Below are positions 37,150 to 62,538 of a stretch of DNA of 64,000 bases, piece by piece. A program made the translations under genes and the position numbers. Within the stretch, counting starts at the first letter, position 1. Every line of letters starts with the position of its first letter. The notes under the pieces were generated by a model, which was not told where the DNA came from, did no database searches, and worked only from the letters and a program-made list of their open reading frames with translations. The DNA is from Macrostomum lignano (lineage: Eukaryota). The DNA lies in the NCBI GenBank assembly GCA_002269645.1, contig NIVC01001994.1:62001-126000 (forward strand), in the 5' to 3' direction.

Positions 37150-40100
37150 GGCTATGGTTATTGCCAATTGCAAAGCTTAGCCAACTAAAACTCTTACACA
37201 GCATTGGCCCCACTTCATATTGGGGCTTTTTGTAATAACCAAAACTTTACAACAAGAAACGTGACAAGCCTGCAGTGAGCTCGCATTTCAGTTCTGTGAC
37301 CACAGCACACCTGACGAGTGTCTGTTCTGGCGTGGCACGGACTTGACGCTATAAACACCAATGAAAGATAAACTTTTCTGATAAGAGTAGAAAAACCTTA
37401 ACAATATTTGGAGACTGTTGGAGCTACGTGTACTTACATGTATACATGTACATGTGGGTGCAACTCATTCTGTATTGTAACAGTGTGGCTATATCACAGT
37501 GCAAGCTATCAGTGTGGATAGCGATTCTCCATGAGATTGATGGTGCGATTCTTAATGAGATTGATGGGGCGATTCTCCATGAGATTGATGGTGCGATTCT
37601 TAATGAGATTGATTGGGGCGATTCTTAATGAGATTGATGGGGCGATTCTCAATGAGATTGATGGGGCGATTCTTAATGAGATTGATGGGGCGATTCTCAA
37701 TGAGATTGATGGGGCGATTCTCAATGAGATTGATGGTGCAATTCTCAATGAGATTGATGGGGCGATTCTCAATGAGATTGATGGGGCGATTCTCAATGAG
37801 ATTGATGGGGCGATTCTCAATGAGATTGATGGGGCGATTCTTAATGAGATTGATGGTGCAATTCTCAATGAGATTGATGGGGCGATTCTTAATGAGATTG
37901 ATGGGGCGATTCTTAATGAGATTGATGGGGCGATTCTCAATGAGATTGATGGTGCAATTCTCAATGAGATTGATGGGGCGATTCTCAATGAGATTGATGG
38001 TGCAATTCTCAATGAGATTGATGGGGCGATTCTCAATGAGATTGACGGTGCAATTCTCAATGAGATTGATGGGGCGATTCTCAATGAGATTGATGGGGCG
38101 ATTCTCAATGAGATTGATGGGGCGATTCTCAATGAGATTGATGGGGCGATTCTTAATGAGATTGATGGGGCGATTCTCAATGAGATTGATGGTGCAATTC
38201 TCAATGAGATTGATGGGGCGATTCTTAATGAGATTGATGGTGCGATTCTTAATGAGATTGATGGGGCGATTCTTAATGAGATTGATGGGGCGATTCTTAA
38301 TGAGATTGATGGGGCGATTCTCAATGAGATTGATGGTGCGATTCTTAATGAGATTGATGGGGCGATTCTTAATGAGATTGATGGGGCGATTCTCAATGAG
38401 ATTGATGGTGCAATTCTCAATGAGATTGATGGGGCGATTCTCAATGAGATTGATGGTGCAATTCTCAATGAGATTGATGGGGCGATTCTCAATGAGATTG
38501 ACGGTGCAATTCTCAATGAGATTGATGGGGCGATTCTCAATGAGATTGATGGGGCGATTCTTAATGAGATTGATGGTGCGATTCTCAATGAGATTGATGG
38601 GGCGATTCTTAATGAGATTGATGGGGCGATTCTTAATGAGATTGATGGTGCAATTCTCAATGAGATTGATGGTGCGATTCTTAATGAGATTGATGGGGCG
38701 ATTCTTAATGAGATTGATGGGGCGATTCTTAATGAGATTGATGGGGCGATTCTCAATGAGATTGATGGTGCAATTCTCAATGAGATTGATGGGGCGATTC
38801 TCAATGAGATTGATGGTGCAATTCTCAATGAGATTGATGGGGCGATTCTCAATGAGATTGACGGTGCAATTCTCAATGAGATTGATGGGGCGATTCTCAA
38901 TGAGATTAATGGGGCGATTCTCAATGAGATTGATGGGGCGATTCTCAATGAGATTGATGGGGCGATTCTTAATGAGATTGATGGGGCGATTCTCAATGAG
39001 ATTGATGGTGCAATTCTCAATGAGATTGATGGGGCGATTCTTAATGAGATTGATGGTGCAATTCTCAATGAGATTGATGGGGCGATTCTCAATGAGATTG
39101 ATGGTGCGATTCTTAATGAGATTGATGGGGCGATTCTCAATGAAATTGATGGGGCGATTCTCAATGAGATTGATGGTGCAATTCTCAATGAGATTGATGG
39201 GGCGATTCTCAATGAGATTGATGGGGCGATTCTCAATGAGATTGATGGGGCGATTCTCAATGAGATTGATGGGGCGATTCTCAATGAGATTGATGGGGCG
39301 ATTCTTAATGAGATTGATGGTGCAATTCTCAATGAGATTGATGGGGCGATTCTTAATGAGATTGATGGGGCGATTCTCAATGAGATTGATGGGGCGATTC
39401 TCAATGAGATTGATGGTGCGATTCTCAATGAGATTGATGGTGCGATTCTCAATGAGATTGATGGGGTGATTCTCAATAAGATTGATGGGGCGATTCTCGA
39501 TGAGATTGATGGGGCGATTTTCAATGAGATTGATGGGGCGATTCTCAATGAGATTGATGGTGTGATTCTCAATTAGATTGATGGGGCGATTCTCAATGAG
39601 ATTGATGGTGCGATTCTCAATGAGATTGATGGGGCGATTCTCAATGAGATTGATGGTGCAATTCTCAATGAGATTGATGGGGCGATTCTCAATGAGATTG
39701 ATGGTGCAATTCTCAATGAGATTGATGGGGCGATTCTCAATGAGATTGATGGGGCGATTCTCAATGAGATTGATGGTGCGATTCTTAATGAGATTGATGG
39801 GGCGATTCTTAATGAGATTGATGGGGCGATTCTCAATGAGATTGATGGTGCAATTCTCAATGAGATTGATGGGGCGATTCTTAATGAGATTGATGGTGCA
39901 ATTCTCAATGAGATTGATGGGGCGATTCTCAATGAGATTGATGGGGCGATTCTCAATGAGATTGATGGGGCGATTCTCAATGAGATTGATGGGGCGATTC
40001 TTAATGAGATTGATGGTGCAATTCTCAATGAGATTGATGGTGCGATTCTTAATGAGATTGATGGGGCGATTCTTAATGAGATTGATGGTGCGATTCTTAA

Positions 40101-42953
40101 TGAGATTGATGGGGCGATTCTCAATGAGATTGATGGGGCGATTCTCAATGAGATTGATGGTGCAATTCTCAATGAGATTGATGGGGCGATTCTCAATGAG
40201 ATTGATGGTGCAATTCTCAATGAGATTGATGGGGCGATTCTCAATGAGATTGATGGTGCGATTCTCAATGAGATTGATGGGGCGATTCTCAATGAGATTG
40301 ATGGGGCGATTCTCAATGAGATTGATGGGGCGATTCTCAATGAGATTGATGGGGCGATTCTTAATGAGATTGATGGGGCGATTCTCAATGAGATTGATGG
40401 TGCAATTCTCAATGAGATTGATGGGGCGATTCTTAATGAGATTGATGGTGCAATTCTCAATGAGATTGATGGGGCGATTCTCAATGAGATTGATGGTGCG
40501 ATTCTTAATGAGATTGATGGGGCGATTCTCAATGAGATTGATGGGGCGATTCTCAATGAGATTGATGGTGCAATTCTCAATGAGATTGATGGGGCGATTC
40601 TCAATGAGATTGATGGGGCGATTCTCAATGAGATTGATGGGGCGATTCTCAATGAGATTGATGGGGCGATTCTCAATGAGATTGATGGTGTGATTCTCAA
40701 TGAGATTGATGGGGCGATTCTCAATGAGATTGATGGTGCGAGTCTCAATGAGATTGATGGGGCGATTCTCAATGAGATTGATGGTGCAATTCTCAATGAG
40801 ATTGATGGGGCGATTCTCAATGAGATTGATGGGGCGATTCTCAATGAGATTGATGGTGCAATTCTCAATGAGATTGATGGGGCGATTCTCAATGAGATTG
40901 ATGGGGCGATTCTCAATGAGATTGATGGGCGATTCTTAATGAGATTGATGGGGCGATTCTCAATGAGATTGATGGTGCAATTCTCAATGAGATTGATGGG
41001 GCGATTCTCAATGAGATTGATGGGGCGATTCTCAATGAGATTGATGGGGCGATTCTTAATGAGATTGATGGTGCAATTCTCAATGAGATTGATGGGCGAT
41101 TCTCAATGAGATTGATGGTGCGATTCTCAATGAGATTGATGGTGCAATTCTCAATGAGATTGATGGGGCGATTCTCAATGAGATTGATGGGCGATTCTCA
41201 ATGAGATTGATGGGGCGATTCTCAATGAGATTGATGGTGCAATTCTCAATGAGATTGATGGGCGATTCTCAATGAGATTGATGGTGCGATTCTCAATGAG
41301 ATTGATGGTGCAATTCTCAATGAGATTGATGGGGCGATTCTCAATGAGATTGATGGTGCAATTCTCAATGAGATTGATGGGGCGATTCTCAATGAGATTG
41401 ATGGTGCAATTCTCAATGAGATTGATGGGGCGATTCTTAATGAGATTGATGGGGCGATTCTCAATGAGATTGATGGTGCAATTCTCAATGAGATTGATGG
41501 GGCGATTCTCAATGAGATTGATGGTGCAATTCTCAATGAGATTGATGGGGCGATTCTCAATGAGATTGATGGTGCGATTCTCAATGAGATTGATGGGGCG
41601 ATTCTTAATGAGATTGATGGGGCGATTCTTAATGAGATTGATGGTGCGATTCTCAATGAGATTGATGGGGCGATTCTCAATGAGATTGATGGGGCGATTC
41701 TCAATGAGATTGATGGTGCAATTCTCAATGAGATTGATGGGGCGATTCTCAATGAGATTGATGGGCGATTCTCGATGAGATTGATGGGGATTCTCGATGA
41801 GATTGATGGGGGGCGATTCTCGATGAGATTGATGGGGGGCGATTCTCGATGAGATTGATGGGGGGCGATTCTCGATGAGATTGATGGGGGGCGATTCTCG
41901 ATGAGATTGATGGGAGGGCGATTCTCGATGAGATTGATGGGGCGATTCTCGATGAGATTGATGGGGCGATTCTCGAATGAGATTGATGGGGCGATTCTCA
42001 ATGAGATTGATGGGGCGATTCTCAATGAGATTGATGGGCGATTCTCAATGAGATTGATGGGGCGATTCTCAATGAGATTGATGGTGCAATTCTCAATGAG
42101 ATTGATGGGGCGATTCTCAATGAGATTGATGGGGCGATTCTCAATGAGATTGATGGGGCGATTCTCAATGAGATTGATGGGGCGATTCTTAATGAGATTG
42201 ATGGGGCGATTCTCAATGAGATTGATGGGGCGATTCTTAATGAGATTGATGGGCGATTCTCAATGAGATTGATGGGCGATTCTCAATGAGATTGATGGGG
42301 CGATTCTCAATGAGATTGATGGGCGATTCTCAATGAGATTGATGGGGCGATTCTCAATGAGATTGATGGGGCGATTCTCAATGAGATTGATGGGGCGATT
42401 CTCAATGAGATTGATGGGGCGATTCTCAATGAGATTGATGGGGCGATTCTCAATGAGATTGATGGGGCGATTCTCAATGAGATTGATGGGGCGATTCTCA
42501 ATGAGATTGATGGGGCGATTCTCAATGAGATTGATGGGGCGATTCTCAATGAGATTGATGGTGCGATTCTCAATGAGATTGATGGGGCGATTCTCAATGA
42601 GATTGATGGGGCGATTCTCAATGAGATTGATGGTGCGATTCTCAATTAGATTGATGGGACGATTCTCAATGAGATTGATGGTGCGATTCTCGATGAGATT
42701 GATGGTGCGATTGTTAATGAGATTGATGGTGCGATTCTCAATGAGATTGATGGGGCGATTCTCAATGAGATTGATGGTGCAATTCTCAATGAGATTGATG
42801 GGGCGATTCTCAATGAGATTGATGGGGCGATTCTCAATGAGATTGATGGGGCGATTCTCAATGAGATTGATGGTGCAATTCTCAATGAGATTGATGGGGC
42901 GATTCTCAATGAGACTGACCGAGTGATTATCAATACCTTTATGGAATAATCTT

Positions 42954-43003
<50 letters not shown>

Positions 43004-43017
43004 GGTCTGTCTGTCTG

Positions 43018-43049
<32 letters not shown>

Positions 43050-43062
43050 CATGTCTGTCTGC

Positions 43063-43094
<32 letters not shown>

Positions 43095-43289
43095 GTTAGT
43101 GTCTGTCTGTCTGTTTGTCTGTCCATGTCTGTCTGCCTGTCTGTCTGTCTGTCTGTCTGTCCCCGTCTGTCGGTCCCTGTCTGTCTGTCCCCGTCTATCG
43201 GTCCCTGTCTGTCTTAGTGTCTTAGTGTCTATCTGTCTGCCGTCAGTCAGTCCCAGCCGCATCAACCCCCCCCCCCACCCGCCACCCAG

Positions 43290-43507
43290 ACGAGGGCCTG
43301 ACCTTCCTGGACCATTTCCGGCTGCTCATCACGCAGATCGGCAACGCCATGGGCTACGTCCGCATGATCCGCAGTGGCGGACTCAACTGCTGCAGCAGCG
43401 CTATCAGATTTGTGCCGGACCTCGAGGATATCCCGGCGTTCGAGGAACTGGCGAGCAAGGCTGGATTGAGCCAGGGCACTGTGACTGCCGCCCAGCAACT
43501 GGACCAA
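43290..43507 (+). pseudogene. WASHC4: Inverted WASHC4 exon copy 1
   Basis: 218 bp, cacccag acceptor, gtaagt donor; matches the reverse complement of 62107-62324 except two synonymous sites. Confidence 0.93.
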
Positions 43508-46500
43508 GTAAGTAGAAACATCTCTTTTTTAAGAAGTCAAAAGAGATCCTCTGGCAATATCAAGAACTTTTTAGAATCATTCCGTCAAAAACTATAGTCA
43601 CCGCTATGAACTCTCTAGAGAATCGGCCTTCAAAACCCTCTTAGAATCGGCCCTGAAAATCATATAAAGATTCTCAATGAGATTGATGGGGCGATTCTCA
43701 ATGAGATTGATGGGGCGATTCTCAATAAGATTGATGGGGCGATTCTCAATGAGATTGATGGGGCGATTCTCAATGAGATTGATGGTGTGATTCTCAATTA
43801 GATTGATGGGACGATTCTCAATGAGATTGATGGTGCGATTCTCAATGAGATTGATGGTGCGATTCTCAATGAGATTGATGGGGCGATTCTCAATGAGATT
43901 GATGGTGCAATTCTCAATGAGATTGATGGGGCGATTCTCAATGAGATTGATGGGGCGATTCTCAATGAGATTGATGGTGCAATTCTCAATGAGATTGATG
44001 GGGCGATTCTCAATGAGATTGATGGGGCGATTCTCAATGAGATTGATGGGGCGATTCTTAATGAGATTGATGGGGCGATTCTCAATGAGATTGATGGTGC
44101 AATTCTCAATGAGATTGATGGGGCGATTCTTAATGAGATTGATGGGGCGATTCTCAATGAGATTGATGGGGCGATTCTTAATGAGATTGATGGTGCAATT
44201 CTCAATGAGATTGATGGGGCGATTCTCAATGAGATTGATGGGGCGATTCTCAATGAGATTGATGGTGCAATTCTCAATGAGATTGATGGTGCGAGTCTCA
44301 ATGAGATTGATGGGGCGATTCTCAATGAGATTGATGGTGCAATTCTCAATGAGATTGATGGGGCGATTCTCAATGAGATTGATGGGGCGATTCTCAATGA
44401 GATTGATGGGGCGATTCTTAATGAGATTGATGGGGCGATTCTCAATGAGATTGATGGTGCAATTCTCAATGAGATTGATGGGGCGATTCTTAATGAGATT
44501 GATGGGGCGATTCTAAATGAGATTGATGGTGCAATTCTCAATGAGATTGATGGGGCGATTCTCAATGAGATTGATGGGGCGATTCTCAATGAGATTGATG
44601 GGGCGATTCTCAATGAGATTGATGGTGCAATTCTCAATGAGATTGATGGGGCGATTCTTAATGAGATTGATGGTGCGATTCTCAATGAGATTGATGGTGC
44701 AATTCTCAATGAGATTGATGGGGCGATTCTCAATGAGATTGATGGGGCGATTCTCAATGAGATTGATGGGGCGATTCTCAATGAGATTGATGGTGCAATT
44801 CTCAATGAGATTGATGGGGCGATTCTCAATGAGATTGATGGTGCGATTCTCAATGAGATTGATGGTGCAATTCTCAATGAGATTGATGGGGCGATTCTCA
44901 ATGAGATTGATGGTGCAATTCTCAATGAGATTGATGGGGCGATTCTCAATGAGATTGATGGTGCAATTCTCAATGAGATTGATGGGGCGATTCTTAATGA
45001 GATTGATGGGGCGATTCTCAATGAGATTGATGGTGCAATTCTCAATGAGATTGATGGGGCGATTCTCAATGAGATTGATGGTGCAATTCTCAATGAGATT
45101 GATGGGGCGATTCTCAATGAGATTGATGGTGCAATTCTCAATGAGATTGATGGGGCGATTCTTAATGAGATTGATGGGGCGATTCTCAATGAGATTGATG
45201 GTGCGATTCTTAATGAGATTGATGGGGCGATTCTTAATGAGATTGATGGGGCGATTCTCAATGAGATTGATGGTGCAATTCTCAATGAGATTGATGGGGC
45301 GATTCTCAATGAGATTGATGGTGCAATTCTCAATGAGATTGATGGTGTGATTCTCAATGAGATTGATGGGGGGCGATTCTCGATGAGATTGATGGGGGGC
45401 GATTCTCGATGAGATTGATGGGGGCGATTCTCGATGAGATTGATGGGGAGGGCGATTCTCGATGAGATTGATGGGGAGGGCGATTCTCGATGAGACTGAT
45501 GGGGGGCGATTCTCGATGAGATTGATGGGGAGGGCGATTCTCGATGAGATTGATAGGGTGCGATTCTAAATGAGATTGATGGGGCGATTCTTAATGAGAT
45601 TGATGGGGCGATTCTCAATGAGATTGATGGGGCGATTCTCAATGAGATTGATGGTGCAATTCTCAATGAGATTGATGGGGCGATTCTCAATGAGATTGAT
45701 GGTGCAATTCTCAATGAGATTGATGGGGCGATTCTCAATGAGATTGATGGGGCGATTCTCAATGAGATTGATGGGGCGATTCTCAATGAGATTGATGGGG
45801 CGATTCTTAATGAGATTGATGGGGCGATTCTTAATGAGATTGATGGGGCGATTCTTAATGAGATTGATGGTGCGATTCTCAATGAGATTGATGGTGCGAT
45901 TCTCAATGAGATTGATGGGGCGATTCTCAATGAGATTGATGGGGCGATTCTCAATGAGATTGATGGTGTAATTCTCAATTAGATTGATGGGGCGATTCTC
46001 AATGAGATTGATGGGGCGATTCTCAATAAGATTGATGGGGCGATTCTTAATGAGATTGATGGGGCGATTCTCAATGAGATTGATGGGGCGATTCTCAATG
46101 AGATTGATGGGGCGATTCTCAATGAGATTGATGGTGCGATTCTCAATGAGATTGATGGGGCGATTCTCAATGAGATTGATGGGGCGATTCTCAATGAGAT
46201 TGATGGTGCGATTCTTAATGAGATTGATGGGGCGATTCTCAATGAGATTGATGGGGCGATTCTCAATGAGATTGATGGTGTGATTCTCAATTAGATTGAT
46301 GGGACGATTCTCAATGAGATTGATGGTGCGATTCTCGATGAGATTGATGGTGCGATTGTTAATGAGATTGATGGTGCGATTCTCAATGAGATTGATGGGG
46401 CGATTCTCAATGAGATTGATGGTGCAATTCTCAATGAGATTGATGGGGCGATTCTCAATGAGATTGATGGGGCGATTCTCAATGAGATTGATGGGCGATT

Positions 46501-46621
46501 CTCAATGAGATTGATGGTGCGATTCTCAATGAGATTGATGGGCGATTCTCAATGAGACTGACCAATGAGTTGATTATCAATACCTTTAATGAGACTGACC
46601 GAGTGATTATCAATACCTTTA

Positions 46622-46674
<53 letters not shown>

Positions 46675-46688
46675 GGTCTGTCTGTCTG

Positions 46689-46720
<32 letters not shown>

Positions 46721-46733
46721 CATGTCTGTCTGC

Positions 46734-46778
<45 letters not shown>

Positions 46779-46902
46779 CCCGTCTGTCGGTCCCTGTCTG
46801 TCTGTCCCCGTCTATCGGTCCCTGTCTGTCTTAGTGTCTTAGTGTCTATCTGTCTGCCGTCAGTCAGTCCCAGCCGCATCAACCCCCCCACCCGCCACCC
46901 AG

Positions 46903-47120
46903 ACGAGGGCCTGACCTTCCTGGACCATTTCCGGCTGCTCATCACGCAGATCGGCAACGCCATGGGCTACGTCCGCATGATCCGCAGCGGCGGACTCAAC
47001 TGCTGCAGCAGCGCTATCAGATTTGTGCCGGACCTCGAGGATATCCCGGCGTTCGAGGAACTGGCGAGCAAGGCTGGATTGAGCCAGGGCACTGTGACTG
47101 CCGCCCAGCAACTGGACCAA
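46903..47120 (+). pseudogene. WASHC4: Inverted WASHC4 exon copy 2
   Basis: As copy 1; cgcagcggc variant. Confidence 0.93.
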
Positions 47121-49419
47121 GTAAGTAGAAACATCTCTTTTTTAAGAAGTCAAAAGAGATCCTCTGGCAATATCAAGAACTTTTTAGAATCATTCCGTCA
47201 AAAACTATAGTCACCGCTATGAACTCTCTAGAGAATCGGCCTTCAAAACCCTCTTAGAATCGGCCCTGAAAATCATATAAAGATTCTCAATGAGATTGAT
47301 GGGGCGATTCTCAATGAGATTGATGGGGCGATTCTCAATAAGATTGATGGGGCGATTCTCAATGAGATTGATGGGGCGATTCTCAATGAGATTGATGGTG
47401 TGATTCTCAATTAGATTGATGGGACGATTCTCAATGAGATTGATGGTGCGATTCTCAATGAGATTGATGGTGCGATTCTCAATGAGATTGATGGGGCGAT
47501 TCTCAATGAGATTGATGGTGCAATTCTCAATGAGATTGATGGGGCGATTCTCAATGAGATTGATGGGGCGATTCTCAATGAGATTGATGGTGCAATTCTC
47601 AATGAGATTGATGGGGCGATTCTCAATGAGATTGATGGGGCGATTCTCAATGAGATTGATGGGGCGATTCTTAATGAGATTGATGGGGCGATTCTCAATG
47701 AGATTGATGGTGCAATTCTCAATGAGATTGATGGGGCGATTCTTAATGAGATTGATGGGGCGATTCTCAATGAGATTGATGGGGCGATTCTTAATGAGAT
47801 TGATGGTGCAATTCTCAATGAGATTGATGGGGCGATTCTCAATGAGATTGATGGTGCGATTCTCAATGAGATTGATGGTGCAATTCTCAATGAGATTGAT
47901 GGGGCGATTCTCAATGAGATTGATGGGGCGATTCTCAATGAGATTGATGGGGCGATTCTCAATGAGATTGATGGTGCAATTCTCAATGAGATTGATGGGG
48001 CGATTCTCAATGAGATTGATGGTGCGATTCTCAATGAGATTGATGGTGCAATTCTCAATGAGATTGATGGGGCGATTCTCAATGAGATTGATGGTGCAAT
48101 TCTCAATGAGATTGATGGGGCGATTCTCAATGAGATTGATGGTGCAATTCTCAATGAGATTGATGGGGCGATTCTTAATGAGATTGATGGGGCGATTCTC
48201 AATGAGATTGATGGTGCAATTCTCAATGAGATTGATGGGGCGATTCTCAATGAGATTGATGGTGCAATTCTCAATGAGATTGATGGGCGATTCTCAATGA
48301 GATTGATGGGGCGATTCTCAATGAGATTGATGGTGCGATTCTTAATGAGATTGATGGGGCGATTCTTAATGAGATTGATGGGGCGATTCTCAATGAGATT
48401 GATGGTGCAATTCTCAATGAGATTGATGGGGCGATTCTCAATGAGATTGATGGTGCAATTCTCAATGAGATTGATGGTGTGATTCTCAATGAGATTGATG
48501 GGGGGCGATTCTCGATGAGATTGATGGGGGGCGATTCTCGATGAGATTGATGGGGGGCGATTCTCGATGAGATTGATGGGGAGGGCGATTCTCGATGAGA
48601 TTGATGGGGAGGGCGATTCTCGATGAGATTGATGGGGGGCGATTCTGGATGAGATTGATGGGGAATGCGATTCTCGATGAGATTGATAGGGTGCGATTCT
48701 AAATGAGATTGATGGGGCGATTCTTAATGAGATTGATGGGGCGATTCTCAATGAGATTGATGGGGCGATTCTCAATGAGATTGATGGTGCAATTCTCAAT
48801 GAGATTGATGGGGCGATTCTCAATGAGATTAATGGTGCAATTCTCAATGAGATTGATGGGGCGATTCTCAATGAGATTGATGGGGCGATTCTCAATGAGA
48901 TTGATGGGGCGATTCTCAATGAGATTGATGGGGCGATTCTTAATGAGATTGATGGGGCGATTCTTAATGAGATTGATGGGGCGATTCTTAATGAGATTGA
49001 TGGTGCGATTCTCAATGAGATTGATGGTGCGATTCTCAATGAGATTGATGGGGCGATTCTCAATGAGATTGATGGGGCGATTCTCAATGAGATTGATGGT
49101 GTAATTCTCAATTAGATTGATGGGGCGATTCTCAATGAGATTGATGGGGCGATTCTCAATAAGATTGATGGGGCGATTCTTAATGAGATTGATGGGGCGA
49201 TTCTCAATGAGATTGATGGGGCGATTCTCAATGAGATTGATGGTGCAATTCTCAATGAGATTGATGGGGCGATTCTCAATGAGATTGATGGGGCGATTCT
49301 CAATGAGATTGATGGGGCGATTCTCAATGAGATTGATGGTGCAATTCTCAATGAGATTGATGGGGCGATTCTCAATGAGACTGACCGAGTGATTATCAAT
49401 ACCTTTATGGAATAATCTT

Positions 49420-49465
<46 letters not shown>

Positions 49466-49479
49466 GGTCTGTCTGTCTG

Positions 49480-49511
<32 letters not shown>

Positions 49512-49524
49512 CATGTCTGTCTGC

Positions 49525-49556
<32 letters not shown>

Positions 49557-49749
49557 GTTAGTGTCTGTCTGTCTGTTTGTCTGTCCATGTCTGTCTGCCT
49601 GTCTGTCTGTCTGTCTGTCTGTCCCCGTCTGTCGGTCCCTGTCTGTCTGTCCCCGTCTATCGGTCCCTGTCTGTCTTAGTGTCTTAGTGTCTATCTGTCT
49701 GCCGTCAGTCAGTCCCAGCCGCATCAACCCCCCCCCACCCCGCACCCAG

Positions 49750-49967
49750 ACGAGGGCCTGACCTTCCTGGACCATTTCCGGCTGCTCATCACGCAGATCG
49801 GCAACGCCATGGGCTACGTCCGCATGATCCGCAGCGGCGGACTCAACTGCTGCAGCAGCGCTATCAGATTTGTGCCGGACCTCGAGGATATCCCGGCGTT
49901 CGAGGAACTGGCGAGCAAGGCTGGATTGAGCCAGGGCACTGTGACTGCCGCCCAGCAACTGGACCAA
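49750..49967 (+). pseudogene. WASHC4: Inverted WASHC4 exon copy 3
   Basis: As copy 2. Confidence 0.93.
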
Positions 49968-52625
49968 GTAAGTAGAAACATCTCTTTTTTAAGAAGTCAA
50001 AAGAGATCCTCTGGCAATATCAAGAACTTTTTAGAATCATTCCGTCAAAAACTATAGTCACCGCTATGAACTCTCTAGAGAATCGGCCTTCAAAACCCTC
50101 TTAGAATCGGCCCTGAAAATCATATAAAGATTCTCAATGAGATTGATGGGGCGATTCTCAATGAGATTGATGGGGCGATTCTCAATAAGATTGATGGTGT
50201 GATTCTCAATGAGATTGATGGGCGATTCTCAATGAGATTGATGGTGTGATTCTCAATTAGATTGATGGGACGATTCTCAATGAGATTGATGGTGCGATTC
50301 TCAATGAGATTGATGGTGCGATTCTCAATGAGATTGATGGGGCGATTCTCAATGAGATTGATGGTGCAATTCTCAATGAGATTGATGGGGCGATTCTCAA
50401 TGAGATTGATGGGGCGATTCTCAATGAGATTGATGGTGCAATTCTCAATGAGATTGATGGGGCGATTCTCAATGAGATTGATGGGGCGATTCTCAATGAG
50501 ATTGATGGGGCGATTCTTAATGAGATTGATGGGGCGATTCTCAATGAGATTGATGGTGCAATTCTCAATGAGATTGATGGGGCGATTCTTAATGAGATTG
50601 ATGGGGCGATTCTCAATGAGATTGATGGGGCGATTCTTAATGAGATTGATGGTGCAATTCTCAATGAGATTGATGGGGCGATTCTCAATGAGATTGATGG
50701 TGCGATTCTCAATGAGATTGATGGTGCAATTCTCAATGAGATTGATGGGGCGATTCTCAATGAGATTGATGGGGCGATTCTCAATGAGATTGATGGGGCG
50801 ATTCTCAATGAGATTGATGGTGCAATTCTCAATGAGATTGATGGGGCGATTCTCAATGAGATTGATGGTGCGATTCTCAATGAGATTGATGGTGCAATTC
50901 TCAATGAGATTGATGGGGCGATTCTCAATGAGATTGATGGTGCAATTCTCAATGAGATTGATGGGGCGATTCTCAATGAGATTGATGGTGCAATTCTCAA
51001 TGAGATTGATGGGGCGATTCTTAATGAGATTGATGGGGCGATTCTCAATGAGATTGATGGTGCAATTCTCAATGAGATTGATGGGGCGATTCTCAATGAG
51101 ATTGATGGTGCAATTCTCAATGAGATTGATGGGGCGATTCTCAATGAGATTGATGGTGCAATTCTCAATGAGATTGATGGGGCGATTCTTAATGAGATTG
51201 ATGGGGCGATTCTCAATGAGATTGATGGTGCGATTCTTAATGAGATTGATGGGGCGATTCTTAATGAGATTGATGGGGCGATTCTCAATGAGATTGATGG
51301 TGCAATTCTCAATGAGATTGATGGGGCGATTCTCAATGAGATTGATGGTGCAATTCTCAATGAGATTGATGGTGTGATTCTCAATGAGATTGATGGGGGG
51401 CGATTCTCGATGAGATTGATGGGGGGCGATTCTCGATGAGATTGATGGGGGGCGATTCTCGATGAGATTGATGGGGAGGGCGATTCTCGATGAGATTGAT
51501 GGGGAGGGCGATTCTCGATGAGATTGATGGGGGGCGATTCTGGATGAGATTGATGGGGAGGGCGATTCTCGATGAGATTGATAGGGTGCGATTCTAAATG
51601 AGATTGATGGGGCGATTCTTAATGAGATTGATGGGGCGATTCTCAATGAGATTGATGGGGCGATTCTCAATGAGATTGATGGTGCAATTCTCAATGAGAT
51701 TGATGGGGCGATTCTCAATGAGATTAATGGTGCAATTCTCAATGAGATTGATGGGGCGATTCTCAATGAGATTGATGGGGCGATTCTCAATGAGATTGAT
51801 GGGGCGATTCTCAATGAGATTGATGGGGCGATTCTTAATGAGATTGATGGGGCGATTCTTAATGAGATTGATGGGCGATTCTTAATGAGATTGATGGTGC
51901 GATTCTCAATGAGATTGATGGTGCGATTCTCAATGAGATTGATGGGGCGATTCTCAATGAGATTGATGGGGCGATTCTCAATGAGATTGATGGTGTAATT
52001 CTCAATTAGATTGATGGGGCGATTCTCAATGAGATTGATGGGGCGATTCTCAATAAGATTGATGGGGCGATTCTTAATGAGATTGATGGGGCGATTCTCA
52101 ATGAGATTGATGGGGCGATTCTCAATGAGATTGATGGGGCGATTCTCAATGAGATTGATGGTGCGATTCTCAATGAGATTGATGGGGAAATTCTCAATGA
52201 GATTGATGGGGCGATTCTCAATGAGATTGATGGTGCGATTCTTAATGAGATTGATGGGGCGATTCTCAATGAGATTGATGGGGCGATTCTCAATGAGATT
52301 GATGGTGTGATTCTCAATTAGATTGATGGGACGATTCTCAATGAGATTGATGGTGCGATTCTCGATGAGATTGATGGTGCGATTGTTAATGAGATTGATG
52401 GTGCGATTCTCAATGAGATTGATGGGGCGATTCTCAATGAGATTGATGGTGCAATTCTCAATGAGATTGATGGGGCGATTCTCAATGAGATTGATGGGGC
52501 GATTCTCAATGAGATTGATGGGGCGATTCTCAATGAGATTGATGGTGCAATTCTCAATGAGATTGATGGGGCGATTCTCAATGAGACTGACCGAGTGATT
52601 ATCAATACCTTTATGGAATAATCTT

Positions 52626-52675
<50 letters not shown>

Positions 52676-52689
52676 GGTCTGTCTGTCTG

Positions 52690-52721
<32 letters not shown>

Positions 52722-52734
52722 CATGTCTGTCTGC

Positions 52735-52766
<32 letters not shown>

Positions 52767-52958
52767 GTTAGTGTCTGTCTGTCTGTTTGTCTGTCCATGT
52801 CTGTCTGCCTGTCTGTCTGTCTGTCTGTCTGTCCCCGTCTGTCGGTCCCTGTCTGTCTGTCCCCGTCTATCGGTCCCTGTCTGTCTTAGTGTCTTAGTGT
52901 CTATCTGTCTGCCGTCAGTCAGTCCCAGCCGCATCAACCCCCCCCACCCCGCACCCAG

Positions 52959-53176
52959 ACGAGGGCCTGACCTTCCTGGACCATTTCCGGCTGCTCATCA
53001 CGCAGATCGGCAACGCCATGGGCTACGTCCGCATGATCCGCAGTGGCGGACTCAACTGCTGCAGCAGCGCTATCAGATTTGTGCCGGACCTCGAGGATAT
53101 CCCGGCGTTCGAGGAACTGGCGAGCAAGGCTGGATTGAGCCAGGGCACTGTGACTGCCGCCCAGCAACTGGACCAA
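52959..53176 (+). pseudogene. WASHC4: Inverted WASHC4 exon copy 4
   Basis: As copy 1. Confidence 0.93.
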
Positions 53177-55832
53177 GTAAGTAGAAACATCTCTTTTTTA
53201 AGAAGTCAAAAGAGATCCTCTGGCAATATCAAGAACTTTTTAGAATCATTCCGTCAAAAACTATAGTCACCGCTATGAACTCTCTAGAGAATCGGCCTTC
53301 AAAACCCTCTTAGAATCGGCCCTGAAAATCATATAAAGATTCTCAATGAGATTGATGGGGCGATTCTCAATGAGATTGATGGGGCGATTCTCAATAAGAT
53401 TGATGGGGCGATTCTCAATGAGATTGATGGGGCGATTCTCAATGAGATTGATGGTGTGATTCTCAATTAGATTGATGGGACGATTCTCAATGAGATTGAT
53501 GGTGCGATTCTCAATGAGATTGATGGTGCGATTCTCAATGAGATTGATGGGGCGATTCTCAATGAGATTGATGGTGCAATTCTCAATGAGATTGATGGGG
53601 CGATTCTCAATGAGATTGATGGGGCGATTCTCAATGAGATTGATGGTGCAATTCTCAATGAGATTGATGGGGCGATTCTCAATGAGATTGATGGGGCGAT
53701 TCTCAATGAGATTGATGGGGCGATTCTTAATGAGATTGATGGGGCGATTCTCAATGAGATTGATGGTGCAATTCTCAATGAGATTGATGGGGCGATTCTT
53801 AATGAGATTGATGGGGCGATTCTCAATGAGATTGATGGGGCGATTCTCAATGAGATTGATGGTGCAATTCTCAATGAGATTGATGGGGCGATTCTCAATG
53901 AGATTGATGGTGCGATTCTCAATGAGATTGATGGTGCAATTCTCAATGAGATTGATGGGCGATTCTCAATGAGATTGATGGGGCGATTCTCAATGAGATT
54001 GATGGGGCGATTCTCAATGAGATTGATGGTGCAATTCTCAATGAGATTGATGGGGCGATTCTCAATGAGATTGATGGTGCGATTCTCAATGAGATTGATG
54101 GTGCAATTCTCAATGAGATTGATGGGGCGATTCTCAATGAGATTGATGGTGCAATTCTCAATGAGATTGATGGGGCGATTCTCAATGAGATTGATGGTGC
54201 AATTCTCAATGAGATTGATGGGGCGATTCTTAATGAGATTGATGGGGCGATTCTCAATGAGATTGATGGTGCAATTCTCAATGAGATTGATGGGGCGATT
54301 CTCAATGAGATTGATGGTGCAATTCTCAATGAGATTGATGGGGCGATTCTCAATGAGATTGATGGTGCAATTCTCAATGAGATTGATGGGGCGATTCTTA
54401 ATGAGATTGATGGGGCGATTCTCAATGAGATTGATGGTGCGATTCTTAATGAGATTGATGGGGCGATTCTCAATGAGATTGATGGGGCGATTCTCAATGA
54501 GATTGATGGTGCAATTCTCAATGAGATTGATGGGGCGATTCTCAATGAGATTGATGGTGCAATTCTCAATGAGATTGATGGTGTGATTCTCAATGAGATT
54601 GATGGGGGCGATTCTCGATGAGATTGATGGGGGCGATTCTCGATGAGATTGATGGGGGCGATTCTCGATGAGATTGATGGGGAGGGCGATTCTCGATGAG
54701 ATTGATGGGGAGGGCGATTCTTGATGAGATTGATGGGGGGCGATTCTCGATGAGATTGATGGGGAGGGCGATTCTCGATGAGATTGATAGGGTGCGATTC
54801 TAAATGAGATTGATGGGGCGATTCTTAATGAGATTGATGGGGCGATTCTCAATGAGATTGATGGGGCGATTCTCAATGAGATTGATGGTGCAATTCTCAA
54901 TGAGATTGATGGGGCGATTCTCAATGAGATTGATGGGGCGATTCTCAATGAGATTGATGGGGCGATTCTCAATGAGATTGATGGGGCGATTCTCAATGAG
55001 ATTGATGGGGCGATTCTCAATGAGATTGATGGGGCGATTCTTAATGAGATTGATGGGGCGATTCTTAATGAGATTGATGGGGCGATTCTTAATGAGATTG
55101 ATGGTGCGATTCTCAATGAGATTGATGGTGCGATTCTCAATGAGATTGATGGGGCGATTCTCAATGAGATTGATGGGGCGATTCTCAATGAGATTGATGG
55201 TGTAATTCTCAATTAGATTGATGGGGCGATTCTCAATGAGATTGATGGGGCGATTCTCAATAAGATTGATGGGGCGATTCTTAATGAGATTGATGGGGCG
55301 ATTCTCAATGAGATTGATGGGGCGATTCTCAATGAGATTGATGGGGCGATTCTCAATGAGATTGATGGTGCGATTCTCAATGAGATTGATGGGGCGATTC
55401 TCAATGAGATTGATGGGGCGATTCTTAATGAGATTGATGGTGCGATTCTTAATGAGATTGATGGGGCGATTCTCAATGAGATTGATGGGGCGATTCTCAA
55501 TGAGATTGATGGTGTGATTCTCAATTAGATTGATGGGACGATTCTCAATGAGATTGATGGTGCGATTCTCGATGAGATTGATGGTGCGATTGTTAATGAG
55601 ATTGATGGTGCGATTCTCAATGAGATTGATGGGGCGATTCTCAATGAGATTGATGGTGCAATTCTCAATGAGATTGATGGGGCGATTCTCAATGAGATTG
55701 ATGGGGCGATTCTCAATGAGATTGATGGTGTGATTCTCAATTAGATTGATGGTGCAATTCTCAATGAGATTGATGGGGCGATTCTCAATGAGACTGACCG
55801 AGTGATTATCAATACCTTTATGGAATAATCTT

Positions 55833-55874
<42 letters not shown>

Positions 55875-55888
55875 GGTCTGTCTGTCTG

Positions 55889-55920
<32 letters not shown>

Positions 55921-55933
55921 CATGTCTGTCTGC

Positions 55934-55965
<32 letters not shown>

Positions 55966-56158
55966 GTTAGTGTCTGTCTGTCTGTTTGTCTGTCCATGTC
56001 TGTCTGCCTGTCTGTCTGTCTGTCTGTCTGTCCCCGTCTGTCGGTCCCTGTCTGTCTGTCCCCGTCTATCGGTCCCTGTCTGTCTTAGTGTCTTAGTGTC
56101 TATCTGTCTGCCGTCAGTCAGTCCCAGCCGCATCAACCCCCCCCCACCCGCCACCCAG

Positions 56159-56376
56159 ACGAGGGCCTGACCTTCCTGGACCATTTCCGGCTGCTCATCA
56201 CGCAGATCGGCAACGCCATGGGCTACGTCCGCATGATCCGCAGTGGCGGATTCAACTGCTGCAGCAGCGCTATCAGATTTGTGCCGGACCTCGAGGATAT
56301 CCCGGCGTTCGAGGAACTGGCGAGCAAGGCTGGATTGAGCCAGGGCACTGTGACTGCCGCCCAGCAACTGGACCAA
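56159..56376 (+). pseudogene. WASHC4: Inverted WASHC4 exon copy 5
   Basis: As copy 1 plus private Leu-to-Phe change (ggattcaac). Confidence 0.93.
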
Positions 56377-58029
56377 GTAAGTAGAAACATCTCTTTTTTA
56401 AGAAGTCAAAAGAGATCCTCTGGCAATATCAAGAACTTTTTAGAATCATTCCGTCAAAAACTATAGTCACCGCTATGAACTCTCTAGAGAATCGGCCTTC
56501 AAAACCCTCTTAGAATCGGCCCTGAAAATCATATAAAGATTCTCAATGAGATTGATGGGGCGATTCTCAATGAGATTGATGGGGCGATTCTCAATAAGAT
56601 TGATGGGGCGATTCTCAATGAGATTGATGGGGCGATTCTCAATGAGATTGATGGGGCGATTCTCAATGAGATTGATGGGGCGATTCTCAATAAGATTGAT
56701 GGGGCGATTCTCAATGAGATTGATGGGGCGATTCTCAATGAGATTGATGGTGCGATTCTCGATGAGATTGATGGTGCGATTGTTAATGAGATTGATGGGG
56801 CGATTCTCAATGAGATTGATGGTGCGATTGTTAATGGGATTGATGGGGCGATTCTCAATGAGATTTATGGGGCGATTCTCAATGAGATTTATGGGGCGAT
56901 TCTCAATGAGATTGATGGGGCGATTCTCAATGAGATTTATGGGGCGATTCTTAATGAGATTTATGGGGCGATTCTCGATGAGATTGATGGTGCAATTCTC
57001 GATGAGATTGATGGGGCGATTCTCAATGAGATTGATGGTGCGATTCTCAATGAGATTGATGGTGCGATTCTCAATGAGATTGATGGGGCGATTCTCAATG
57101 AGATTGATGGGGCGATTCTCAATGAGATTGATGGGGCGATTCTCAATGAGATTGATGGGGCGATTCTCAATGAGATTGATGGGGCGATTCTCAATGAGAT
57201 TGATGGGGCGATTCTCAATGAGATTGATGGGGCGATTCTCAATGAGATTGATGGGGCGATTCTCGATGAGATTGATGGGGGGCGATTCTCGATGAGATTG
57301 ATGGGGCGATTCTCAATGAGATTGATGGGGCGATTCTCGATGAGATTGATGGGGGGCGATTCTCGATGAGATTGATGGGGCGATTCTCGATGAGATTGAT
57401 GGGGTGCGATTCTAAATGAGATTGATGGGGCGATTCTTACTGAGACTGACCGAGTGATTATCAATACCTTTATGGAAATGATGAACACAAAATCCTTTAA
57501 GATCTCAAAGTTTTTATGAATTTCAAAATTAAACTATAAAAATTACAGAGTTGGCGCAGTTTATAATTATTAGATTATTATTAATGCCTGCCTGAATCAG
57601 TCAAGTACTCGCGGTTTAATTAGGCTTTAAATTTTGAGTTGTTGAAAAAATATCACGATAGTAAAATAAATCGATCAAAATGTACTGGGTCAAGTATAAA
57701 TATTAACATGAATCATTAACGAAATTAACTTGAAAAATAACTTGTAAGAGTGGAAAAAATTAAATAATGAAACTAAACATACTACTGGTAGGCAATTGCT
57801 TGAATTTAAGCAAACAGTTTTTTTCTGAAGTAAATATTGCGTTTTTCATTTTGAGGGGCGCAGGCTAATCAAATAAATTTGGCTAAGATAAAAATTTACT
57901 GAATTCCAGTCCAGTGACACAAAAATAATCTTGTAGGATTCCTCAAAAGGTACATATCTTTATTAAACTGGGATTTATCTCAATGTAGATCCAAATAGTT
58001 CATGAGGATTTCCCTCCTCCTTCCCTTTC

Positions 58030-58807: not shown

Positions 58808-61800
58808 TCACGAAGCCGCAGTCGTCGTCGCTTCCGCTGACTCCGCTGATGTCGGGGCCGCAGCTGCAGAGTCGCCTGCGCCGCCACTTCCTCCGCTGCC
58901 TCCGCCTCCGCCGCCCTCTTTCTCGGCGCGGAAGAAGATTCTGGCGCTAGTGAGGCCCTGGTCTAGTAGGGCGAATTCGCGCGAATATCGCTCGTGCCGG
59001 CTGAGAGTCAGGGTCAGCGTCTGCTGGAGCTTCTCATCCGACCGGCCGGCCTTGTCCAACTGCTGCTTGGCCTGGGTGAGTTTAAGGCGATTCTCAGAGT
59101 GAGTTTAAGGCGATACTCAGAGTGAGTTTAAGGCGATTCTCAGAGTGAGTTTAAGGCGATACTCAGAGTGAGTTTGGGGCGATACTCAGAGTGAGTTTAA
59201 GGCGATACTCAGAGTGAGTTTAAGGCGAAACTCAGAGTGAGTTTAAGGCGATTCTCAGAGTGATTTTAAGGCGATTCTCAGAGTGAGTTTAAGGCGATAC
59301 TCAGAGTGAGTTTAAGGCGATACTCAGAGTGAGTTTGGGGCGATACTCAGAGTGAGTTTAAGGCGATACTCAGAGTGAGTTTAAGGCGATACTCAGAGTG
59401 AGTTTAAGGCGATACTCAGCGTGAGTTTAAGGCGATACTCGGAGTGAGTTTGGGGCGATACTCAGAGTGAGTTTAAGGCGATACTCAGAGTGAGTTTGGG
59501 GCGATACTCAGAGTGAGTTTAAGGCGATACTCAGAGTGAGTTTGGGGCGATACTCAGAGTGAGTTTAAGGCGATACTCAGAGTGAGTTTAAGGCGATTCT
59601 CAGAGTGAGTTTAAGGCGATACTCAGAGTGAGTTTGGGGCGATACTCAGAGTGAGTTTGGGGCGATTCTCAGAGTGAGTTTAAGGCGATACTCAGAGTGA
59701 GTTTGGGGCGATTCTCAGAGTGAGTTTAAGGCGATACTCAGAGTGAGTTTAAGGCGATACTCAGAGTGAGTTTAAGGCGATACTCAGAGTGAGTTTAAGG
59801 CGATACTCAGAGTGAGTTTAAGGCGATTCTCAGAGTGAGTTTAAGGCGATTCTCAGAGTGAGTTTAAGGCGATACTCAGAGTGAGTTTAAGGCGATACTC
59901 AGAGTGAGTTTAAGGCGATACTCAGCGTGAGTTTAAGGCGATACTCGGAGTGAGTTTGGGGCGATACTCAGAGTGAGTTTAAGGCGATACTCAGAGTGAG
60001 TTTGGGGCGATACTCAGAGTGAGTTTGGGGCGATTCTCAGAGTGAGTTTAAGGCGATACTCAGAGTGAGTTTAAGGCGATTCTCAGAGTGAGTTTAAGGC
60101 GATACTCAGAGTGAGTTTGGGGCGATACTCAGAGTGAGTTAAAGGCGATACTCAGTGTGAGTTTAAGGCGATTCTCAGAGTGAGTTTAAGGCGATACTCA
60201 GAGTGAGTTTGGGGCGATACTCAGAGTGAGTTTAAGGCGATACTCAGAGTGAGTTTGGGGCGATACTCAGAGTGAGTTTGGGGCGATTCTCAGAGTGAGT
60301 TTAAGGCGAAACTCAGAGTGAGTTTAAGGCGATTCTCAGAGTGAGTTTAAGGAGATACTCAGAGTGAGTTTAAGGCGAATCTCATAGTGATTTTAAGGAG
60401 ATACTCAGAGTGAGTTTAAGGCGATTCTCATAGTGATTTTAAGGAGATACTCAGAGTGAGTTTAAGGCGATTCTCAGAGTGAGTTTAAGAGGATTCTCAC
60501 GCTTAAAAACGTTCTATCCTTACGCTTTAAAACGTGTCGATATAAATCAATTACCTCAGCCTTAAGCGTTCCGTAGTGCCTCTGAACTGAGCGGAACCAA
60601 TGCAGGGAATCGAACTCGCGACTTTGATCCAACAGTTTCAACACGTAGGCCAGGCCCATGGCAAAGCCATCGTCGGAGAAAGCCGCTCCGGTTTTGTTTT
60701 TCTTATTCAGTCGATCTTTGCACTGGACCATGTGCTCCACAAAGTTCACAGTCAGGGCTGGCACAATCACGTGAACGTTGCGCAGATGGGCATTCTTTTT
60801 GTCGCGAAATTCTTTGGCGAACACGTCAACTAGCATAGCGAAATAGTCTGTGCCTTCGCTGTAGTTCTTGACTAGACCTGCGACTGTCTGCGGGAGGGTG
60901 CCAATGAGGGCCGATTCTTATAGGGTTTTGAGGGACGATTCTTACAGGGTTTTGAGGGCCGATTCTTACAGGGTTTTGAGGGCCGATTCTTACAGGGTTT
61001 TGAGGGCCGATTCTTAGAGGGTTTTGAGGGACGATTCTTAGAGGGTTTTGAGGGCCGATTCTTAGAGGGTTTTGAGGGACGATTCTTACAGGGTTTTGAG
61101 GGCCGATTCTTACAGGGTTTTGAGGGCCGATTCTTACAGGGTTTTGAGGGCCGATTCTTAGAGGGTTTTAAGGGCCGATTCTTACAGGGTTTTGAGGGCC
61201 GATTCTTACAGGGTTTTGAGGGCCGATTCTTACAGGGTTTTGAGGGCCGATTCTTAGAGGGTTTTGAGGGACGATTCTTACAGGGTTTTGAGGGCCGATT
61301 CTTACAGGGTTTTGAGGGCCGATTCTTAGAGGGTTTTAAGGGCCGATTCTTACAGGGTTTTGAGGGCCGATTCTTACAGGGTTTTGAGGGCCGATTCTTA
61401 TAGGGTTTTGAGGGCCGATTCTTATAGGGTTTTGAGGGCTGATTCTTAGAGGGTTTTGAGGGCCGATTCTTAGAGGGTTTTGGGGGCCGATTCTTATAGG
61501 GTTTTGAGGGCCGATTCTTAGAGGGTTTTGAGGGCCGATTCTTAAAGGGTTTTGGGGGCCGATTCTTATAGGGTTTTGAGGGCCGATTCTTACAGGGTTT
61601 TGGGGGCCGATTCTTACAGGGTTTTGAGGGACGATCCTTACAGGGTTTTGAGGGCCGATTCTTAGAGGGTTTTGGGGGCCGATTCTTACAGGGTTTTGAG
61701 GGATGATTCTTAGATAGTTTTGAGGGCCGGTTCTGAGAGGGTTTTGATAGCCGATTCTAAGTGGGTTTGAGGGCCGATTTTTATATGACTTTGAGGGACG

Positions 61801-62538
61801 ATTCTTAAAGGATTTTGAGGGCCGATTTTTTAAGTTTTGAGGGACGATTTTTAGAGGATTTAAAAGGCCGATTATTAGATGGTTCTGATGGCCGATTATT
61901 AGATGGTTTTGATGGCCGATTCTAAGCGGGTTGTAAAGGGCGATTTTTATATGATTTTCAGGGCCGATTCTAAGAGGGTTTTGAAGGCCGATTCTCTAGA
62001 GAGTTCATAGCGGTGACTATAGTTTTTGACGGAATGATTCTAAAAAGTTCTTGATATTGTCAGAGGATCTCTTTTTACTTCTTAAAAAAGTGATGTTTCT
62101 ACTTACTTGGTCCAGTTGCTGGGCGGCAGTCACAGTGCCCTGGCTCAATCCAGCCTTGCTCGCCAGTTCCTCGAACGCCGGGATATCTTCGAGGTCCGGC
62201 ACAAATCTGATAGCGCTGCTGCAGCAGTTGAGTCCGCCACTGCGGATCATGCGGACGTAGCCCATGGCGTTGCCGATCTGCGTGATGAGCAGCCGAAAAT
62301 GGTCCAGGAAGGTCAGGCCCTCGTCTGGGTGCGGGGTGGGGGGGGTTGATGCGGCTGGGACTGACTGATGGCAGAGATACAGACAGATAGACACTAAGAC
62401 AGACGGGGACCGACAGACCGGGACAGATAGACAGGGAGACAGACAGGCAGACAGACAGACACAGACACAGACAGACAGACAGACAGACACAGACAGACAG
62501 ACACAGACAGACAGACAGACACAGACAGACAGACAGAC

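Follow-up and report, generated by a model that had tools for sequence, protein, structure and literature searches.

The DNA analyzed here is a 64,000-nucleotide stretch of Macrostomum lignano (contig NIVC01001994.1, positions 62,001 to 126,000, forward strand), which we call the window; positions are counted from its first nucleotide. Tandem repeats are very abundant in this eukaryotic DNA, and more than 20 distinct arrays were found by Tandem Repeats Finder (TRF). The largest of them, satA, is a 24-bp satellite at 37521-57449 with the consensus GCGATTCTCAATGAGATTGATGGG, and lies between the 3' end of the WASHC4 gene and the next minus-strand open reading frame (ORF), which starts near 37173. 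The array is intergenic, not intronic, and its right edge is separated from the WASHC4 stop codon by 1.36 kb of downstream sequence. Within satA are five cassettes, each with an inverted copy of one internal WASHC4 exon, and we argue below that this piece was captured once and then multiplied together with the surrounding satellite. Such cassettes had been noticed in an original prediction made from the letters of the sequence; with respect to WASHC4, their place can now be given as downstream of the stop codon (58808-58810) and not within the gene.

The resident exon was identified by homology. Joined to the exon upstream (62600-62981), the exon at 62107-62324 matched the Pfam domain WASH-7_mid (PF14744) with an E value of 7e-90, and 374 homologues of the resident sequence were found, annotated as WASH complex subunit 7/4, the best being 68-70% identical. 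Moreover, tblastn with ten homologues placed the WASHC4 exons collinearly at 62.98, 62.3, 60.9 and 59.05 kb. Judged by these matches, the resident exon is part of the gene for WASH complex subunit 7, or WASHC4 (WASH-7). The resident intron contains a satellite of its own, satB (60905-62005), and two candidate minus-strand polyadenylation signals, AATAAA (TTTATT at 57959) and ATTAAA (TTTAAT at 57615), are found between the stop codon and satA.

When the reverse complement of 61901-62700 was compared with the window by BLASTN, five full-length matches were obtained on the plus strand, all with E = 0 and all inside satA (43000-43668, 46637-47281, 49462-50128, 52672-53337 and 55871-56537). Their identity to the resident segment was 92.7-94.0%, microsatellite included. 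Alignment of the five copies with the resident segment revealed that each cassette is an inverted copy of ~61946-62590, with a length of 0.73-0.76 kb and one common order: a (TCTG)n microsatellite, a pyrimidine-rich acceptor, the 218-bp exon, a GTAAGT donor and 161 bp of intron, of which the final ~55 bp are ~2.3 inverted satB monomers. Each exon copy is exactly 218 bp long, and all five have kept the ...CACCCAG acceptor and the GTAAGT donor. Relative to the resident exon, at a distance of 5.6-18.6 kb on the same chromosome, the cassettes are antisense. Five cassettes of ~750 bp, antisense to an exon at 62107-62324 of WASHC4, were what the original prediction had described, and this was confirmed; the spacings of the exon copies (3613, 2847, 3209 and 3200 bp) agreed to the base. 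The coordinates of these features are given in Table 1. A 154-aa ORF over cassette 1 (43051-43515) was rejected as a gene, since its frame is wrong relative to that of the true exon. A second microsatellite, (TGTC)n, of ~300 bp is present at 28063-28367, with the same motif and strand as in the cassettes; its neighbours are coding-looking minus-strand sequence, and its flanks are unrelated to the cassette junction.

Table 1. Positions in the window of satA, its blocks and cassettes, and the WASHC4 exons and source segment
Feature	Position	Strand	Description	Basis
satA array	37521..57449	+	~666 monomers, interrupted by the five cassettes only	TRF and monomer parsing
Satellite block S0', left of cassette 1	40476..42909	+	diverged paralogue of the repeated block; landmark order the same, several indels	BLAST offsets and variant strings
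Cassette 1	42910..43668	+	flank copy 42910-42946, filler TAATCTT, (TCTG)n, exon copy 43290-43507, 161 bp of intron with inverted satB	
Satellite block S1	43669..46552	+	117 monomers; unit pattern with a 16-monomer insertion	
Cassette 2	46553..47281	+	exon copy 46903-47120; microsatellite 54 bp shorter; without GAATAATCTTTC	
Satellite block S2	47282..49375	+	86 monomers; unit pattern with deletions	
Cassette 3	49376..50128	+	exon copy 49750-49967	
Satellite block S3	50129..52581	+	101 monomers	
Cassette 4	52582..53337	+	exon copy 52959-53176	
Satellite block S4	53338..55788	+	101 monomers; 99.4% identical to S3	
Cassette 5	55789..56537	+	exon copy 56159-56376; sole nonsynonymous change (Leu to Phe)	
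Terminal satellite block S5	56538..57440	+	37 monomers; A-G-A start like the units, then another order	
Native distal edge and flank of satA	57441..57477	+	TGAGACTGACCGAGTGATTATCAATACCTTTATGGAA; template of the 37-bp piece left of the cassettes	
Last WASHC4 coding exon	58808..59071	-	stop codon TGA at 58808-58810	
Next WASHC4 exon	60555..60887	-	WASH-7_C (PF14746), E 1.7e-43	
Resident source segment	61946..62590 (approximate)	-	~2.3 satB monomers, 100 bp of intron, exon 62107-62324, intron with (ACAG)n at 62372-62588	
Resident WASHC4 exon	62107..62324	-	218 bp; end of the WASH-7_mid domain	
Upstream WASHC4 exon	62600..62981	-	WASH-7_mid; splice sites read from the sequence	

The edges of the cassettes are informative about their origin. 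At the left edge of cassettes 1, 3, 4 and 5, a 37-bp stretch (TGAGACTGACCGAGTGATTATCAATACCTTTATGGAA) is identical to the native sequence 57441-57477, that is, to the distal edge of satA and its flank; in cassette 2, this stretch is 34 bp. The flank copy is followed by TAATCTT(TCTG)n in the cassettes; the native sequence runs on as ATGATGAAC... and passes into unique DNA at 57478. For comparison of the surrounding satellite, satA was parsed into 666 monomers and each distinct variant was coded as one letter. The flank copy is preceded by monomers of the order ...ABCAABC and the native flank by ...HFAHFH plus an S-like monomer, and therefore only the short flank stretch was copied, with an entry at TGAGA, which is shared with the satellite monomer. 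A model in which the end of the array had been duplicated was dropped on the same grounds in favor of a short templated patch. The right junction is identical in all five cassettes: the inverted intron ends with ...GAAAATCATATAAA and joins satA at GATTCTCAATGAG without a shared base, and the resident sequence past this point is AATCGCC.... The junction sequences of the cassettes are ...TTTATGGAATAATCTTTCTGTCTG... and ...GAAAATCATATAAAGATTCTCAATGAG.... Only in cassette 2 is the flank-copy junction duplicated in tandem (33 bp, 46551-46621), the first copy being 89% identical, so this duplication and the loss of the GAATAATCTTTC filler region are a secondary rearrangement private to one unit.

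The order of segments is thus satA, 57441-57477, filler, inverted ~62590-61946 and satA again, with templates 0.9-19 kb away. The three junctions have, in this order, ~5 bp of microhomology (TGAGA, which is inside the repeat and thus ambiguous), a 7-bp filler and 0 bp. No terminal inverted repeats, target-site duplication or poly(A) were present at the cassette or array boundaries checked, neither inverted nor direct terminal repeats were found there, and the left and right satA flanks have no similarity to each other. A processed retrocopy was rejected, since intron is kept on both sides of the exon and poly(A) is lacking; the retained introns indicate a DNA rather than an mRNA template. Also, a circle of the exon region alone, inserted at the edge of the array, would leave unique flank and not satellite to the right of each cassette. 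The flank copy, the filler, the inverted WASHC4 piece and the satellite on the right side together point to a chimeric patch in the satellite, and, as far as the junctions tell, the founder was thus a chimeric insertion from two templates and not the product of transposition or retrocopying. The original prediction of an exon captured into the satellite holds as to the capture, but the captured piece is chimeric and consists of 37 bp of flank, a 7-bp filler and ~0.7 kb of inverted intron-exon-intron.

If the five cassettes go back to one capture, they should have differences from the resident copy in common, and this was indeed found. Outside the microsatellite is a 424-bp core in which all five cassettes depart from the resident copy by the same six substitutions (1.4%; 98.6% identity), whereas the cassettes differ from each other at only 1-4 sites (0.2-0.9%) and in the length of a C run. 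One example of a cassette-specific variant is CATTTCCGG, where the resident copy has CATTTTCGG. The microsatellite likewise contains internal variant motifs and indels that are common to the five cassettes and absent from the resident copy. Two of the differences fixed relative to the resident copy are in the exon and both are synonymous (C at exon base 29 and G at base 137 in the cassettes, T and A in the resident exon); a third synonymous change is common to cassettes 2 and 3, and the only nonsynonymous one (Leu to Phe, in cassette 5, from C to T at exon base 93) brings the exon substitutions to four. Six fixed substitutions against 1-4 among the cassettes, together with the common junctions, argue for one capture followed by amplification. 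On this comparison, there is a single founder capture, multiplied later within a larger unit that contains satellite.

The satellite between the cassettes gives a picture of this larger unit. Blocks S1 to S4 have a nearly common variant string, AGABIJBABCABCAADBCDAEC...KNFFFRbcWSTABC...ABIJMPABCAABCQ. When S3 and S4 were compared, 83 of the 101 monomer variants were the same in register (82%), with a mean of 16% at other registers, and the nucleotide identity of the two blocks was 99.4%, compared with ~94% for out-of-register satellite alignments. The five units are arranged head to tail and have lengths of 3193, 3613, 2847, 3209 and 3200 bp, with ~2.4 kb or ~101 monomers of satellite per unit (range, 86-117). 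The blocks of satellite variants had been predicted to recur in each unit, and the monomer strings bear this out; a capture into the satellite followed by amplification within a larger unit, also part of the prediction, is supported by the six shared substitutions, the common junctions and the ~101-monomer order. The recurrent order had been taken for a satellite higher-order repeat (HOR). From the monomer strings, the repeat is rather a young macro-unit of 2.8-3.6 kb with a variable number of monomers, and it would hardly count as a classical HOR, given the foreign DNA in each unit and the changing number of monomers. The oldest part of satA (37521-39500) has a motif of its own, BCBCVC, every 15-19 monomers, a native higher-order pattern that is independent of the 3.2-kb unit.

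How the unit was multiplied may be seen from the ends of the blocks. S1 to S4 start like S5 (A-G-A), which is on the right side of the insert, and end like the left side, S0 (...JMPABCAABCQ), as expected of the product of a misaligned crossover. Judged by its monomer order, S5 is probably what is left of the ancestral array on the right side of the insertion. Furthermore, two variable sites in the cassettes occur in all four combinations: GC/CG at 9-10 nt upstream of the acceptor separates cassettes 1, 2 and 5 from cassettes 3 and 4, and T/C at exon base 86 separates cassettes 1, 4 and 5 from cassettes 2 and 3. The similarities of the satellite blocks around the FFF landmark are mosaic as well, with S1 resembling S4 and S2 resembling S3. 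Both the four combinations and the mosaic blocks speak for exchange or conversion among the copies. The original prediction had left the choice between unequal exchange and a rolling circle or extrachromosomal circular DNA; unequal exchange is favored here as the most likely amplifier, and simple insertion of an exon-only circle is contradicted by the chimeric junctions.

These data would be accommodated by an origin in two stages. In the first, a break or a stalled fork inside satA downstream of WASHC4 would have been repaired by copying two nearby templates successively, that is, 37 bp of the array edge and flank (57441-57477) and, after a 7-bp filler, ~0.7 kb of WASHC4 from ~62590 down to 61946 in inverted orientation; synthesis would then have rejoined the satellite bluntly at ...CATATAAA|GATTCTC.... 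In the second, a misaligned homologous exchange between the satellite blocks flanking the insert could have led to the five copies of the unit of ~101 monomers, flank copy and cassette, with further in-register exchanges raising the copy number. Later exchange or conversion, together with slippage, may have produced the differences in length and the mosaic variants. What can be read directly from the DNA is the layout of the cassettes, their junctions, the derived substitutions that they share and the order in which the monomer variants recur, and we consider it likely that the locus as a whole is a DNA-level composite tandem repeat with this two-stage origin, in which the exon copy is an inert passenger.

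The sequence gives no hint of a function for the exon copies. If an exon copy were spliced to the next copy, the product would read ACG AGG GCC TGA (TRA*) and stop after three codons. Since the copies are located outside the gene, are antisense and are unreadable in series, they are most probably inert passengers. Their splice signals are intact because the copy is young, and use of these signals would need a plus-strand transcript, which cannot be inferred from the sequence. The exon had been called splice-competent, and this applies to the signals but goes no further, exon-to-exon joining giving TRA*.

Several points weigh against this account. Microhomology, the hallmark of replicative template switching, is ambiguous or absent at the founder junctions, and capture of fragments by end joining is equally possible. 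With regard to the amplification, a 3.2-kb circle would give the same head-to-tail junctions. The inertness of the cassettes is assumed, and the four exon substitutions are too few to judge selection or constraint. More generally, both the repair pathway and amplification by unequal exchange are deduced from the arrangement, as is the absence of a function, and the reality and copy number of the cassettes rest on internal consistency within one assembly window.

The last point leads to the question of whether the cassette, or at least its five-fold number, could have arisen by misassembly, for example, from chimeric or fold-back reads or a loop in the assembly graph. A near-homogeneous 24-bp satellite of 20 kb is hard to assemble, some of the differences between the copies are homopolymer or microsatellite lengths, which are typical long-read errors, and no independent data for the locus were found: exact scans of metagenome contigs gave 0 matches to the cassette-satellite junction and 0 to a satellite 1.5-mer, and the cassette ORF was not on record in an exact-protein look-up. 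However, a chimeric resident read could not produce the six substitutions shared by the cassettes, and the units differ from each other by substitutions, 13-16-monomer indels, a 54-bp deletion and a 33-bp duplication. Moreover, the longest exact stretch common to any two units is 914 bp, which excludes repeated traversal of a graph loop and means that ordinary long reads resolve the copies. An artefact is therefore improbable in our view and would mostly concern the copy number. Somewhat less improbable, but still unlikely, is that the founder arose as described and a 3.2-kb circle of cassette, ~101 monomers and flank copy was then multiplied by rolling-circle replication and reintegrated. Head-to-tail units with identical junctions would result, and the last two units are indeed nearly equal (3209 and 3200 bp), with S3 and S4 99.4% identical. 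On the other hand, the unit lengths vary, S0' is clearly more diverged than S1 to S4, and the four-gamete and mosaic variants are expected of stepwise exchange, though they could also follow a rolling-circle burst; in addition, the array is contiguous with its native flank and no separate reintegration junction is visible.

Helitrons are known to capture exons and to carry tandem repeats, and a Helitron, a Pack-type element or a foldback-like element with internal satellite might have taken up the exon and inserted in tandem. Transposon-like structures do exist in the window (a long interspersed nuclear element [LINE] ORF at 12001-14295 and an element with inverted tandem-repeat arms at 3254-9150). 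We nevertheless regard this as hardly credible: terminal inverted repeats and a target-site duplication are lacking and the flanks of the array are dissimilar, the "end" of the unit is a copy of the native edge of the array, which continues into unique DNA at 57478, and the source is close by on the same chromosome, at a distance of 5.6-18.6 kb. Among the ORFs from other parts of the window that were scanned with Pfam, none had a transposase domain. Finally, the cassettes could be a functional antisense or hairpin locus. WASHC4 read-through RNA with the sense exon and five antisense copies would form ~0.65 kb of double-stranded RNA and tune WASHC4 by RNA interference or editing or, by masking the splice sites of the resident exon, through forced skipping of the frame-shifting 218-nt exon. 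In line with this, the cassettes are antisense, share ~98.6% identity with the resident copy in the 424-bp core and start 2.3 kb past the stop codon on the transcribed strand, and gene-derived inverted repeats are sources of hairpin RNA (hpRNA) in Drosophila (PMC10317233, PMC10292708). But WASHC4 is a conserved housekeeping-type gene, unlike the selfish targets usually under hpRNA control, the candidate polyadenylation signals at 57959 and 57615 intervene between the stop codon and the array, and the arrangement is fully explained as a neutral by-product, which makes such a function very unlikely. If it were true, a satellite-amplified exon copy would be a cis-acting regulator of its housekeeping parent gene, tunable by copy number.

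The origin of composite or macrosatellite repeats normally has to be reconstructed long after it took place, whereas here all three founder junctions, both templates and the first crossover product are readable at base resolution. The locus may serve to illustrate how foreign DNA enters a satellite of short monomers, how a kilobase-scale periodicity arises there and how an exon is duplicated in the process, and the cassettes are built-in markers for tracking unequal exchange and conversion in an otherwise featureless array. The five 0.65-kb inverted repeats, at 5.6-18.6 kb from the parent exon, are also substrates for inversions, by which the 3' end of WASHC4 would be disrupted. In practical terms, the cassettes will confuse read mapping and gene prediction at the 218-bp WASHC4 exon.

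The surroundings of satA are themselves repetitive. Four different 23-24-bp satellites (37521-57449, 59076-60489, 60905-62005 and 63023-64000) have one orientation and a common GGCGATTCT core, and fill the region downstream of WASHC4 and three successive introns almost wholly; 5 bp separate the start of satD from the last-exon acceptor (59071), and ~17 bp separate the end of satB from the acceptor at 60887. It looks as if one satellite family were spreading through a single gene and diverging there. Between the WASHC4 stop codon and satA is a 36-bp tandem array of ~11 copies (58095-58499, in the region 58038-58672) with two NF-kB/Rel-like palindromes per unit (GGGGATTCCCC and GGGAAATTCC); 59 of the window's 66 matches to GGGRNWYYCC are in this region, where 5.6 were expected by shuffling. 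On the other side, the minus-strand ORF at 36862-37173 (103 aa) has a hydrophobic, signal peptide-like start (MLALLLLPCLLLSS...) and had no match in a Pfam search; it is ~350 bp from the left edge of satA, which places the satellite directly upstream of the start of the next gene.

Further away, two inverted arrays of a 49-bp repeat (3254-4145 and 8593-9150) flank a 4.4-kb GC-rich segment (55-60% GC) and resemble a foldback-type element, the ORFs of which had no significant Pfam match. The minus-strand ORF at 12001-14295 (764 aa) has endonuclease/exonuclease/phosphatase and reverse-transcriptase domains, consistent with ORF2 of a LINE. An array of the 16-bp repeat AGCATCGAGCTTGTGA (20512-23674; 3.1 kb, ~200 copies) gives rise to spurious minus-strand ORFs of more than 1,000 aa. 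The uninterrupted minus-strand ORF at 29895-31271 codes for 458 aa with a Cupin_8/JmjC domain (E 2e-23) and is apparently an intronless gene or a large exon; its product was not on record in the exact-protein look-up. Rfam gathering and tRNA scans of the whole window were empty.

How does the locus compare with known systems? The gene-bearing macrosatellites D4Z4/DUX4, RS447/USP17 and DYZ5/TSPY consist of kilobase-scale tandem units with expressed whole ORFs or genes, and their copy number varies by unequal exchange. DUX macrosatellites also feature in a published account (PMC13558733). The unit described here is likewise a kilobase-scale tandem unit with coding sequence; in contrast to D4Z4/DUX4-type repeats, this is a single internal 218-bp exon that is untranslatable alone or in series. 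In alpha-satellite HORs, too, the order of monomer variants recurs at a long period and unit identity is far above monomer identity, but each unit here has 0.76 kb of nonsatellite DNA and 86-117 monomers, and there are only four or five units. Drosophila hpRNA or Su(Ste)-type loci (PMC10317233, PMC10292708) are similar in that gene-derived sequence is arranged in tandem and antisense to its parent gene. They differ in that the arms here are 5.6-18.6 kb from the target exon and form no compact hairpin, and the parent is a conserved endosomal-trafficking gene.

Both replicative template switching and end joining with fragment capture typically leave patches that combine several templates and contain fillers (Hastings et al. 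2009, PMC2621351). As in fork stalling and template switching/microhomology-mediated break-induced replication, several short nearby segments were joined in one event, one of them inverted and with a small filler, and the breakpoints are in or near stall-prone repeats (microsatellite, satellites). Unlike in these processes, one junction is without microhomology, another has a filler, and the later amplification went by homology; nonhomologous or polymerase theta-mediated end joining with fragment capture fits the founder equally well.

The closest parallel is provided by the composite elements of the human genome, defined as tandemly arrayed units of three or more repeats (human genome repeat survey, Hoyt et al., 10.1101/2021.07.12.451456). 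They likely expand by unequal crossing over, exons can be "captured" in their core unit, and eight human composite arrays carry coding annotations (10.1101/2021.07.12.451456). The unit of satA, (TCTG)n, inverted satB and unique DNA is of the same kind, kilobase scale and head to tail. It is distinguished by having only five copies that are very young (0.2-0.9% apart in the core), by the dominance of one short-monomer satellite, by an exon that comes from the adjacent gene and by founder junctions that are legible to the base. Arrays with captured exons have already been described. The locus leaves our knowledge of the class unchanged and is best placed among the composite/macrosatellite arrays, as a new and very young member.

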